Positions 10,719 to 15,484 of a DNA stretch of 64,000 nt are shown here, one piece after another. This DNA comes from Macrostomum lignano (taxonomy: Eukaryota), in assembly GCA_002269645.1 (NCBI GenBank), contig NIVC01002387.1, forward strand, positions 80,872 to 144,871, in the 5' to 3' direction. The notes beneath the pieces were generated by a model that had not been told where the DNA came from, searched no databases, and saw nothing but the letters and a program-made list of their open reading frames with translations. Position 1 is the stretch's first letter. Every line of letters starts with the position of its first letter. The position numbers and the translations under genes were made by a program.

Positions 10719-13700
10719 ATGCACAACCATCGAAAGAATTTCAACGATCCGTTCAAGAGGAGGACAGCCGATACGGGTAGACAGAACTTCCCTGCTAGCG
10801 ACGTCCCCGAACAGGCCAATAATAGCCCAGGCTATGGAACGCTTCGGCAGCCACCTGAGCCGCAGGTGCAGCCGCAGTTCAGGCGCGACCAGGTTGATCA
10901 AAGGCGGATGTCAATGTCCAGAGCGCCACAGGCTGTTGAGCAACGCTTCCAAGTATATGATCCGGCAGCGGCCGCCCAGAACTTCATGCCTGGTCAGCCT
11001 CCGCCGCCGCCGCCGACTCTGCCACCGCCCACACCGCCGCCGATGCCGCCGACTCCACCGTTGCCGGAGATGTCGAACCCGCCAGAGTCATGGGTGCGTT
11101 AAAATATATGAGTAGTATGATGATGATTTGTGGCAGTTAAAGTTGTGCAGCTTGTACACATAGACCAGAATTCGTTCTTCAAAAGGCCTGTGTGGTCAAT
11201 GTACCGCCTTTAGATTGGGAGGTGGGGTTGCCACTCTCCCAGATGCCCAGTTGTGCCACCTGCCTGCACTCTCCCGATGCCCAGTTGTGCCACCTGCCTG
11301 CACCTCTGCACCCTCCCAGATCCTCACATGCTGCACTTCCAATTGACAGGCCGCCGAAATGATGCAAAAATGCGGCTTTGAACGCGACCGAGTCAGCGCC
11401 CACTGGGCCTTCGCGGACGTGCTGGAGAAAATGTGGCAGGATGCCGGTTTTGTATTCGCTGGCAATTTCACCGAGGGCTGGGGCTACAACACCTTCAGAG
11501 TTGACGGCAGGTGCGGCTACGACTCGGCGCTCACCTATAAGTACATCGTGCCAGACTACATGGTGCACATTGCCGGAGCCTGCTCCTGCCGAAAGCCGGT
11601 GCAGAAGGTTGTGCTGAACGAGGACGGCTCGGTGACGCTCAACCATGGTGAGCAGGATGTTAGTGCTGTCTAGTCTGGGCTAAGAAAGCCACAGGTTCTA
11701 TGCTGGCGGAATAGAAAATTTTGATCTATCTATCTATCTATCTATCTATCTATCTATCTATCTATCTATCTATCTATCTATCTATCTATCTATCTATCTA
11801 TCTATCTATCTATCTATCTATCTATCTATCTATCTATCTATCTATCTATCTATCTATCTATCTATCTATCTATCTATCTATCTATCTATCTATCTATCTA
11901 TCTATCTATCTATCTATCTATCTATCTATCTATCTATCTATCTATCTATCTATCTATCTATCTATCTATCTATCTATCTATCTATCTATCTATCTATCTA
12001 TCTATCTATCTATCTATCTATCTATCTATCTATCTATCTATCTATCTATCTATCTATCTATCTATCTATCTATCTATCTGTCTATCTATCTATCTATCTA
12101 TCTATCTATCTATCTATCTATCTATCTATCTATCTATCTATCTATCTATCTATCTATCTATCTATCTATCTATCTATCTATCTATCTATCTATCTATCTA
12201 TCAGTCTCTCCATCCATCTTTCCATCTCAGTCACAAGCCCTAAACGATATAAAAGAAATAAAGAGTTATTTTCTAAAGCAGTAGATCATATATTATTATA
12301 AAAACTTCAAACACATCTTACCCCAAGATTGCATCGTGCACCTGCGGGCGATGAATCTGCTCAAGGAGGACGCCGTACTGATGGTTAACGAGATGCGCAG
12401 GCAAGCCACTAAGAGTTTGGGACTCACAGCCTGCGGACCCGCTCTTAGCCTGGAGCAGGTGAGTATTAAATGTACAGAGTACATTGCGGATTCTTTGAGA
12501 ACAGACACTGGCAACAGACACTGACAACAGACACTGACAACAGACACTGACAACAGACACTGACAACAGACACTGACAACAGACACTGACAACAGACACT
12601 GACAACAGACACTGAAAACAGGCACTGACAACAGACACTGACAACAGACACTGACAACAGACACTGACAACAGACACTGAAAACAGGCACTGACAACAGA
12701 CACTGACAACAGACACTGACAACAGACACTGACAACAGGCACTGACAACAGACACTGACAACAGACACTGACAACAGACACTGACAACAGATACTGGCAA
12801 CAGACACTGACAACAGACACTGACAACAGACACTGACAACAGACACTGACAACAGACACTGACAACAGGCACTGACAACAGACACTGACAACAGACACTG
12901 ACAACAGACACTGACAACAGATACTGGCAACAGACACTGACAACAGACACTGACAACAGACACTGACAACAGACACTGACAACAGACACTGATAACCGAC
13001 ACTGACAACAGACACTGACAAACAGACACTGACAAACAGACACTGACAACAGACACTGACAACAGACACTGACAGACATTGATAACAGGAACTCCGATAA
13101 CGGCAGCTGTCAACCGCCACCCCCGCCCCCAGGTCTTCCCCTGCTGCCAGCGGCCCCGCCTACCCCGCCTGGAGCTGCTGGACCTGCCGGACCAGCCGGT
13201 GTACATTCGGCCGGACGAGTTCGAGCTGCAGGTTGGAGGCCGGACAAGCAGGCAGCCCACAGGCCGGCTGGACCTCAGCCTGCTGGACAGGGCGCTGTTC
13301 CGCAAGCTCACAAGTCACCAAGGCCGACTCTACGTGGCATTGAAGATGCTTCTCCTAGAAGAGCTACCCAAGAAATACCCCAACGCTGCGTGCTTCTCCG
13401 AGGTGCACTGCAAGCAGGTGCTGCTGCACTACCTTCTGACGAAGCGTCGCAGCGGCAGCCTCGCCGTGGAGGTTCGCGACGCTCTGCAGCTGATGACGGT
13501 GAAGAACGCCGAGGGTCCGTTTCTGCGCGACAATCAGCTGCGCTGCGCCGCCTTCCGAACCAGCTGGATGCCGCTCGCCACGGCGTGCTCAGCCTCCATT
13601 CTGCAGAAAGCTTTGGCCAGCCTGGCCGCCGACTCTGAGCAGCTGCTCATCAATCGGCTGCGTCGGCTTCAGTCCAGCGTCGCGGAAGACAGCATTGGCG

Positions 13701-15484
13701 GCGTTGCCGTCTTCCAGCCAATGACGCTGGCAATTCCAGGTCACAAGCGGCAGCTGACAGCGGGATTGGGCGCGACCAGGCGGCTCGCCGGCTGCAGGGA
13801 TGTCGCCTTTTTTGTCTACCGGGTCATGGAGCGGCTGCTCCAGCCACAGCTGACCGACAATGTCCGGGATCTGCTGTCGGACATCGATGCTGTGCGATCT
13901 CTAGCTGGGGTGACCGCCATCTGCCTGCAGTGCCTGGCGCTCATGAAGATGAACGACTGGCAGAGTGCGCAGGCTGTCCTGCGGGAGAGCCGGGCGGCCA
14001 TGCAGCGGGTGCTGCGGGAGTTCCCGGTAAGTGCTGCAAACAGACAGACAGACAGACAGACAGACAGACAGACAAACAGACAGACAGACAGACAGACAGA
14101 CAGACAGACAGACAGACAGACAGACAGACAGACAGACAGACAGACAGACAGACAGACAGACAGACAGACAGACAGACAGACAGACAGACAGACAGACAGA
14201 CAGACAGACAGACAGACAGACAGACAGACAGACAGACAGACAGACAGACAGACAGACAGACAGACAGACAGACAGACAGACAGACAGACAGACAGACAGA
14301 CAGACAGACAGACAGACAGACAGACAGACAGACAGACAGACAGACAAACAGACAGACAGACAGACAGACAGACAGACAGACAGACAGACAGACAGACAGA
14401 CAGACAGACAGACAGACAGACAGACAGACAGACAGACAGACAGACAGACAGACAGACAGACAGACAGACAGACAGACAGACAGACAGACAGACAGACAGA
14501 CAGACAGACAGACAGACAGACAAACTCAAACTCACGCAGGCGAACTCAACCGCCGAGTCAATGGAGCAGTACCTACTCAGCGGCTGGGACTGTGCCTGGC
14601 AGTTCAAGGCCAAGTTGACAATCGAGGAGTCGCAGCACACCGTGAGCCAGCACTACAGACCCATCGGCACGGAGTTCCTGGCCTCCTTCCCGTTGATTCG
14701 CTACGCCTTCTTTCCCTGCCAGATGACGCGAATGCAGCAGATGAGCGGCTGCCTGGTGGAGTACTCGCTTAACATCAACTTCTTGGCGCTGATGAACTGC
14801 CTGGTGGTGCAGACGGTGCCGCAGAACCCGCAGAACACCGAGCTCTGGCGCTGGTTCAACGACAATAAGCCGCTGGAGGCGCAGGAGCTCTTCGCTCTGT
14901 CCCTGTCCGATCAATACTTGGACCAGCAGCAGCTCAGCCAGCTGTGCCTGCGGCTGCTCGAACGCCTGCGACCGATGCGCCAGCCAAATCAACTGCAGCA
15001 GCATCCGGAGCAGCCGAGGCAACGCCTGCCGGAGTTAGACTTCCTGGAGCACCTGCGCATCCGATTGCTGCACCGCTGGATCCGAAGCTTGCCGAGCCAG
15101 TCCCGCTGGGGCCCAGAGGAGGTGCAGTCTTGCCGCCAGCTGGGCCAGCTGCACGCCAGCCTGCCCGGCAGTCAAAGCATCGCCGAAATCCTCGCCCCCG
15201 TGTCCGGTCCCGATCTGTCTAAAACAGCGGCCAGTCAAGTTTTCAAAAAATTGTGCGAATTTCACACGCGCGAACTTGACAACACATTCGGACGCAAGCT
15301 GGCTAAGGGCGAGTACGGGGATCTGGGCCGCCAGTTCCTGGCTGCCAGCCTCTACAGCTGGTACTGCCTGGATTCAGCCACGGCTAAAAAGTACAGACAG
15401 ACACTGGCCACCTTCAGTGCCGGCAAGGGGCCGCAGCTGTTTCCGGAACAGGACACTGGAGACACCGTCAGCCTGCTTGGCTGA
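10719..15484 (+). CDS. Mab-21/cGAS-like receptor (cGLR)-family protein, ~880 aa, 5 exons: 10719-11093, 11350-11647, 12328-12458, 13133-14026, 14540-15484
   Basis: All four introns are GT-AG with matching phases (0,1,0,0); the total of 2643 nt is 881 codons. Mab-21 landmarks occur in order: AGNFTEGWG...GYDS (GS..EG...SD), [16 protein letters not shown] (SFS..E..L), [17 protein letters not shown] (Q..Y..LK) and [12 protein letters not shown] (SY..KT.LF). Pro-rich N-terminus and helical C-terminus. Confidence 0.75.
11724..12202 (+). repeat. (TATC)n microsatellite, ~120 units, cGLR intron 2
   Basis: Direct reading; one TGTC interruption. Confidence 0.98.
12501..13083 (+). repeat. 13-bp minisatellite (ACAGACACTGACA)n, cGLR intron 3
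   Basis: Direct tandem repetition, about 44 copies. Confidence 0.95.
14041..14522 (+). repeat. (CAGA)n microsatellite filling cGLR intron 4
   Basis: Lies between donor CCG|gtaagt (14027) and acceptor ctcacgcag| (14539). Confidence 0.97.

Follow-up and report, generated by a model that had tools for sequence, protein, structure and literature searches.

A five-exon gene of Macrostomum lignano that probably encodes a maintained pseudoenzyme derived from cGAS-like receptors

A 64-kb stretch of the Macrostomum lignano genome (contig NIVC01002387.1; called the window here, with all positions counted from its first nucleotide) contains, at 10719-15484 on the plus strand, a five-exon gene whose product appears to be related to the cGAS-like receptors (cGLRs). 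Five coding segments with GT..AG borders splice in phase into a coding sequence of 2643 nt that encodes 880 residues, which bears out the original prediction that five open reading frame (ORF) fragments at these positions are parts of a single gene. The spliced product is identical, residue for residue, to the GenBank entry PAA58336.1 (BOX15_Mlig029778g1, 'hypothetical protein', Macrostomum lignano; UniProt A0A267EAA5). The gene had been described as hidden; it is already annotated, though unnamed. The GenBank annotation of this assembly, Mlig_3_7, rests on a transcriptome that was assembled from RNA-seq data under genome guidance (StringTie/TACO, 'coregenes' set; PMC5730564). Since the product matches a model of this origin, the junctions are transcript-derived, including the one between 11647 and 12328, where exon 2 might instead have read through to a stop codon at 11673. 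We conclude that M. lignano has, and transcribes, a genuine five-exon gene at this locus. Two UniProt models of the older ML2 assembly, P0062 (1932 residues, 'ANF_receptor domain-containing') and P0063 (792 residues, 'SWIM-type domain-containing'), fall into the same 90%-identity cluster as the 880-residue product, hereafter the window protein; these are probably chimeric gene models that join the PAA58336.1 gene to its neighbours.

Exon 1 (10719-11093; residues 1-125) opens with the start ATG, a start that is the same in PAA58336.1 and in the near-identical protein P0001, and encodes a low-complexity, proline-rich N-terminus (about residues 92-122); no Pfam domain is found in it. Exon 2 (11350-11647; residues 126-224 plus 1 nt) encodes the N-lobe of a nucleotidyltransferase (NTase), with helix alpha1, strand beta1, a degenerate G-N loop, a family-specific insert of 10 residues, and strand beta2 with a degenerate A-x-T motif. 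This assignment was based on phmmer matches to the cores of paralogues, on an alignment of the window protein plus paralogues (A1), on hhalign comparison with cGLRs, and on the secondary structure of an AlphaFold2 model. Exon 3 (12328-12458; residues 225-268) carries a sub-clade-specific insert, common to the nearest other relative (P0002), and the strand GPALSLEQ with the third catalytic column. The rest of the core, a helical lobe equivalent to Mab-21_C and the start of a family-specific helical extension are encoded by exon 4 (13133-14026; residues 269-566). Exon 5 (14540-15484; residues 567-880 and the TGA stop codon) encodes a C-terminal helical domain that begins with the family motif DxAW.F and for which Pfam returned no known domain.

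The four introns, all on the plus strand with GT..AG borders, are filled with satellite repeats, as had been noted from the sequence. Intron 1 (11094-11349) contains a 34-bp repeat, intron 2 (11648-12327) the tract (ATCT)126, intron 3 (12459-13132) 44 copies of the 13-mer TGACAACAGACAC, and intron 4 (14027-14539) the tract (ACAG)121. Two more copies of the gene are present in the same assembly, namely Mlig024291g1 (885 residues, locus L001) and Mlig031884g1 (882 residues, locus L002); the assembly is redundant owing to chromosome duplication (PMC5730564). Splicing of L001 and L002 at the junctions of the window gene gave exactly their deposited proteins. The five-exon layout and the splice-site contexts are common to all three copies, and all eight splice sites are canonical in each. 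Differences between the exons of the three copies are limited to point changes and in-frame indels, while introns 1 to 4 vary 2- to 4-fold in length (256, 680, 674 and 513 nt in the window copy; 1102, 492, 295 and 261 nt in L001; 501, 759, 256 and 329 nt in L002). In intron 1, the 34-bp repeat is present in 2.1 copies in the window (11232-11303) and in roughly 25 copies in L001 (6556-7406), which reveals that the minisatellite turns over fast among nearly identical copies of the gene.

Intron 4 is in frame and free of stop codons, and therefore an ORF of 801 residues reads through it (13079-15484, plus strand), in which (ACAG)n is translated as a (TDRQ)n tract. If this intron were retained, the proteins of the window copy and L001, though not that of L002, would gain a repeat peptide. 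Read-through as the source of the main product was rejected: the intron breaks the frame in L002, and each of the three annotated models removes it.

Relatives of the window protein were sought in several ways. A word-indexed homologue search with the single protein returned its twin only, and the same kind of search with alignment A1 returned none, probably because low-complexity words of P0002 swamped the candidates. Exhaustive phmmer comparison with 1.84 billion cluster representatives gave 18 relatives (E 8e-24 to 1e-3); all of the 10 for which names were retrieved come from M. lignano, as do all 28 matches of a profile search with a further alignment (A3). Most of these relatives consist of ankyrin repeats, an NTase-like core and Pfam Mab-21_C (PF20266), and their UniProt names are 'Mab-21 domain-containing' or 'Mab-21-like HhH/H2TH-like domain-containing'. 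In seven paralogues the PF20266 match attains the gathering score (24.1); a match to Mab-21 (PF03281) is found in none. Tandem double cGLR-like cores are found in P0003 (residues 31-493 and 778-1232) and P0004 (136-595 and 851-997), an arrangement that agrees with the multi-cGLR fusions noted in Li et al. 2023 (PMC9980059). According to the supplement to that study, five M. lignano family members were cloned as predicted cGLRs, i.e., PAA45980.1, PAA86972.1, PAA57558.1, PAA93208.1 and PAA68676.1 (PMC9980059), and the first of these belongs to the cluster represented by the relative P0005.

With the ankyrin-bearing paralogues of the same species (P0003-P0019) the window protein shares a homologous N-lobe, helical lobe and C-terminal extension (E down to 6e-19), the insert between G-S and D-x-D (EGWG..DGR; family pattern EGWGn..l[DN]Gr), the CC.YP strand and the DSAW.F motif at the end of the family extension. 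It differs from them in having only about 22% identity, a proline-rich N-terminus in the place of ankyrin repeats, substitutions at four catalytic positions, and the insert encoded by exon 3, which is shared only with P0002. The ankyrin repeats that other family members carry at the N- or C-terminus are absent, with no Ank match at E<=10; some other members of the family also lack Ank in their UniProt models. A second paralogue was looked for within the 64-kb window and was not found.

The relationship to cGLRs becomes visible at the level of profiles. Searched against the PDB, the family profile A1 matched cGAS-like receptor 1 (8gjy, E 1.4e-6) and about 30 cGAS chains, and essentially nothing else. 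For hhalign comparison, a reference profile was built from eight bivalve and coral cGLRs in the screen list of Li et al. 2023. Relative to these published cGLRs, the active paralogues gave a probability of 99.6% (E 6e-25), and A1 gave a probability of 99.5% (E 3e-23) over 266 columns across both lobes. An AlphaFold2 model of the window protein, made with a 14-sequence family alignment, had exclusively cGAS, MB21D2 or bacterial CD-NTases (cGAS/DncV-like nucleotidyltransferases) among its top 10 Foldseek matches in the PDB; the single-sequence AlphaFold2 model was unusable (predicted local distance difference test score, pLDDT, of 35). The assignment of the window protein to the cGLRs is transitive and profile-based, yet consistent throughout. 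These comparisons show that the gene arose within an expansion of ankyrin-repeat cGAS-like receptor (Mab-21 superfamily) genes that is specific to the M. lignano lineage.

The catalytic positions of the window protein were assigned by the same hhalign comparison and by a family alignment made with a hidden Markov model (HMM) from 60 sequences, namely the window protein and 59 family proteins that had been collected. The degenerate motif AGNFTEGWG...GYDSALTY lies at 11458-11538, and the Asn, Ala and Thr replacements ascribed to it by the original prediction are found at the positions given there. Aligned with the published cGLRs, N164 (codon AAT, 11464-11466) falls under the catalytic Ser of the G-S motif, A185 (11527-11529) and T187 (11533-11535) of the run A185-L186-T187 (GCG-CTC-ACC, 11527-11535) fall under the metal-binding D-x-D, and S265 (codon AGC, 12447-12449) falls under the third catalytic Asp, all on the plus strand. 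The third acidic position had been left ambiguous within LEQV; alignment with paralogues and with published cGLRs resolves it to S265, with E267 (12453-12455, plus strand) two residues past it. In 12 paralogue N-lobes, the residues of G-S, S-D-x-D and P-A-x-D are invariant. Consistent with this, the family HMM alignment has G-S-D-D-D in all paralogue domains that span all positions (44/44, each of which keeps D-D in the columns of A185 and T187), and the partial domains agree. The combination G-N-A-T-S was found only in the window protein and its near-identical copies (P0001 in the alignment; P0061 has the same motifs). The nearest other relative, P0002, is without the G-S/D-x-D segment and has a Leu at the third acidic position. 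An acidic residue in 'VDGR' was considered as a catalytic residue and rejected, as this column is D or N in the paralogues.

The active-site motif of cGLRs has been described as h[QT]GS X8-20 [DE]h[DE]h X50-90 h[DE]h, and Li et al. 2023 (PMC9980059) state that second-messenger synthesis requires it, which they confirmed by mutating four cGLRs. The paralogues, with VVGS X20 DIDV X~55 VDxV, conform to it except at the Q/T position. The window protein, with FAGN X20 ALTY X75 LSL, fits the published spacing, but the Ser and the three acidic residues are replaced and the motif is not matched. Both cGAS and cGLRs depend on the acidic triad, and the window protein therefore almost certainly cannot make a nucleotide second messenger. 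Substitution is not confined to these positions. Conservation of 97% or more was found for 43 columns of the family, of which 20 are kept and 23 changed in the window protein; those kept are mostly structural Gly, Pro, Cys and Trp residues, and they include G163, W169, G170, G178, S184, H198, P262 and C273. The catalytic columns are kept in 0/4 cases versus 20/39 for the other conserved columns. A selective, surgical loss of the active site was rejected on these counts; the catalytic loss belongs to a broader divergence of the protein.

To assess constraint, pairwise ratios of non-synonymous to synonymous substitution rates (dN/dS) among the three copies were calculated by the Nei-Gojobori method with Fisher tests. 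The comparison of the window copy with L001 gave a dN/dS of 0.14 (13 synonymous and 6 non-synonymous changes; p 4e-5), that with L002 gave 0.25 (10 and 8; p 4e-3), and L001 relative to L002 gave 0.07 (9 and 2; p 8e-5). This shows that the gene is kept intact under purifying selection. The window protein is 28% identical to P0002, compared to the value of about 22% for the active paralogues in A1, and P0002 shares with it both the insert encoded by exon 3 and the C-terminal region. P0002, distant as it is, likewise has neither the third Asp nor the G-S segment, which suggests that the degenerate lineage is old. In a midpoint-rooted neighbour-joining tree, made without an outgroup, the window protein and P0002 are sister to the ankyrin-bearing clade.

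Taken with the descent of the gene, these results make it likely that the gene is a maintained cGLR-derived pseudoenzyme, most likely one that works non-enzymatically in a binding, adaptor or regulatory capacity; non-enzymatic work is the most likely mode because the gene stays intact under purifying selection. The protein has retained the two-lobed NTase architecture of the family, its 10-residue activation-loop insert and its long C-terminal helical extension. It has lost the ankyrin repeats and acquired the proline-rich N-terminus in their place, and each of its four catalytic residues has been exchanged (N164 for Ser, A185 and T187 for the two Asp of D-x-D, and S265 for the third Asp). The polyproline N-terminus (about residues 92-122) would then serve as a partner-binding module instead of the ankyrin repeats. 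A role such as polyproline-mediated partner recruitment or modulation of active paralogues is speculative. In a more specific form, which we hold only tentatively and judge rather unlikely, the protein would be a dedicated non-catalytic part of a flatworm-specific cGLR network, with a cGLR fold in which recognition of a ligand or of an active paralogue is still in place. Its signalling, or its interference, would run through the polyproline N-terminus and the long helical C-terminal domain without a nucleotide, and it could act as a decoy, as an adaptor or as an inhibitor of active ankyrin-bearing cGLRs.

Non-enzymatic roles are known for proteins with a cGAS-type NTase fold and an incomplete site: MAB21L1/L2 act in developmental patterning and MiD49/MiD51 in Drp1 recruitment. 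By analogy, these proteins would be precedents for the proposed way of working. They are ancient and widely conserved branches, different from that of the window gene, which is a species-restricted offshoot, of recent date, within an expanded and putatively immune family. In the sister OAS family, likewise, the dead paralogues OASL and mouse Oas1b/Oas1d act as regulators or adaptors. This is an analogy only, since OAS is a different NTase family, and the likeness is that of inactive offshoots of expanded innate-immune NTases. With cGAS and cGLRs themselves (cGLR1 of 8gjy, and the bivalve and coral cGLRs), the window protein shares profile-level homology in both lobes and a predicted fold that ranks cGAS first. 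It differs from them in a loop from G-S to D-x-D that is 10 residues longer, in a C-terminal helical extension of roughly 400 residues, in the failure of the defining active-site motif, and in the absence of direct pairwise or Pfam similarity. The second-best Foldseek match of the model is human MB21D2 (PDB 7lt1, probability 0.99), an orphan Mab-21-fold protein without known product or ligand (PMC9980059). MB21D2 was counted by Li et al. as having a complete putative active site (PMC9980059), whereas that of the window protein is incomplete. Mab21L1/2/3, on the other hand, are without a predicted functional active site (Li et al. Fig. 1 legend, PMC9980059).

Several observations weigh against the view that the gene is a maintained pseudoenzyme, and these are best considered together with the explanations that they would favor. 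The dN/dS values come from only 11-19 substitutions between very recent copies (dS about 0.015-0.02). The gene might be a decaying relic, i.e., a former cGLR gene without function, whose frame is open only since the copies are young: synonymous sites differ by 1.5-2%, which leaves little time for disabling mutations since the split, all catalytic residues and 23 of the 43 family-conserved columns are gone, and no Pfam model recognises the protein. The changed columns are also compatible with a long period of relaxed evolution and then a different fold-level function. Yet an 880-residue ORF over five exons has stayed intact in an old lineage that retains about 22% identity to the active paralogues, and after such divergence a relic is disfavored; the canonical splice sites of all three copies, exon indels that are all in frame despite the variation of the introns, dN/dS ratios of 0.07-0.25 that are significantly below 1, and a GenBank model that stems from transcript assembly all speak in the same direction and make a relic quite improbable. 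A different objection comes from D183 and E267, which lie two residues from the canonical acidic columns, hence on the same face of the predicted strands, and which may confer residual metal or nucleotide binding on the window protein. If so, the protein could still be an enzyme or a nucleotide binder by way of shifted carboxylates, other chemistry, or cofactor binding without turnover, and the retained pocket framework (G163, the EGWG motif, DGR, S184 and P262/C273) is in keeping with this. Nucleotide binding persists in inactive proteins of the Mab-21 fold, for example in MAB21L1 and in MiD51, which binds ADP. Against such an activity, both metal-binding Asp residues, the third Asp and the Ser have been lost together, and the usual inactive control for cGAS is a mutant of the acidic pair. 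The essential nature of the motif in the mutagenesis of four cGLRs (PMC9980059) argues likewise, and we regard a surviving enzyme or nucleotide binder as improbable.

Other observations concern the cGLR assignment on which the pseudoenzyme view depends. Scans of the window protein against Pfam, whole and as segments (the Mab-21_C-equivalent and C-terminal parts), matched no family at E<=10, and phmmer of the protein against PDB sequences gave no match. The original prediction had stated that the lack of a Mab-21 HMM match would refute it; the protein remains below a match to the PF03281 and PF20266 HMMs even at E<=10, and this result is overridden only by transitive, profile-level evidence. 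The window protein alone, compared to the cGLR profile by hhalign, gave a probability of 45% (E 2e-4) for the hinge and C-lobe only. A profile of the N-lobe only found no NTase in the PDB and only a weak NTP_transf_2 match in Pfam, and therefore the register of the N-lobe rests on hhalign, the motifs and predicted secondary structure. The family-based AlphaFold2 model is mediocre (pLDDT 61.7, predicted template modelling score 0.60) and its Foldseek scores are weak (E 9e-3 to 0.5, TM-scores 0.33-0.46). Because the neighbour-joining tree is without an outgroup, the notion of a derived loss rests on the wider cGLR consensus. The ancestral chemistry of the M. lignano family itself is assumed, as the main text of Li et al. 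2023 names no M. lignano family member and so reports none as active (PMC9980059). The likeness to cGLRs might then be superficial, and the protein, perhaps the whole family, might represent another Pol-beta-type NTase lineage or a non-immune Mab-21 branch. Most platyhelminths have Mab21-like proteins only, and the main text of that study reports activity for no M. lignano protein (Li et al. 2023, PMC9980059); moreover, no family member reaches PF03281 and the Mab-21_C matches are near threshold, weak matches to NTP_transf_2 and MTPAP-like palm domains occur, and the residue ahead of G-S is V or M versus the published Q or T. However, the hhalign probabilities of 99.5-99.6% against published cGLRs belong to alignments that cover the two lobes and match the catalytic columns to each other, the best PDB profile matches are exclusively cGLR1 and cGAS, Foldseek puts cGAS and MB21D2 first, and five proteins of the family had been chosen as predicted cGLRs by Li et al. 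(PMC9980059). A merely superficial likeness is thus very improbable. The pseudoenzyme claim of the original prediction is upheld by the family architecture of Ank and Mab-21_C, the hhalign values, the substituted catalytic columns and the dN/dS range.

Surveys of cGLRs keep only complete active sites, so that dead offshoots are filtered out and stay uncharacterised. As expected from the active-site filter of Li et al. 2023, the PAA58336.1 gene is not in the parts of their supplement that were considered (PMC9980059). A literature search found no paper on the gene identifiers or on the pairing of 'cGAS-like receptor' with 'pseudoenzyme'. The family offers one selectively maintained dead paralogue beside about 50 apparently active ones, in a worm that supports transgenesis and RNA interference. 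Since inactive OASL, Oas1b, MiD51 and MAB21L1 became regulators or adaptors, and since the worm is tractable, the gene provides an entry point to what a cGLR fold does without catalysis. Were the protein indeed part of such a network, it would give the first description of a regulatory pseudo-cGLR within an invertebrate cGLR expansion, where the network meant is the flatworm-specific one outlined above. The wider significance is modest: the gene is annotated, its family was already noted as cGLR-like, and pseudoenzyme offshoots are common in expanded families.

The remainder of the window contains several further features. About 3.4 kb upstream of the cGLR-derived gene, on the same strand, an ORF of 253 residues (6543-7304, plus strand) encodes a CNPase domain (2',3'-cyclic nucleotide 3'-phosphodiesterase; PF05881, E 1e-27), and the same neighbour is found beside L001 (gene at 2019-2645). 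The presence of a 2H phosphoesterase beside a cGLR-derived gene may be a coincidence, because the copies are recent duplicates. Roughly 220 bp past the stop codon of the gene, a 40/78-bp minisatellite (15 and 7.5 copies; 15708-16302, plus strand) is open in all three forward frames, giving Pro/Ser/His-rich ORFs of 191-244 residues with no credible Pfam match; it is probably a non-coding repeat of the 3' untranslated region or of intergenic DNA. At 27444-32594 (plus strand), three consecutive long ORFs begin with a weak, sub-threshold match to the cold-shock domain (CSD), followed by RVT_1, RT_RNaseH, Integrase_H2C2 and rve, and this element is a long terminal repeat (LTR) retrotransposon of the Ty3/gypsy type with apparently open frames. 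Finally, ORFs with MIB_HERC2 and a ZZ zinc finger, with an F-box, with SPRY, and with a Pro-rich repeat matching Cornifin are distributed among 1838-2605 (minus strand), 25208-26284 (minus strand), 59432-60544 (plus strand) and 32709-33740 (plus strand), and are pieces of unrelated genes or repeats.

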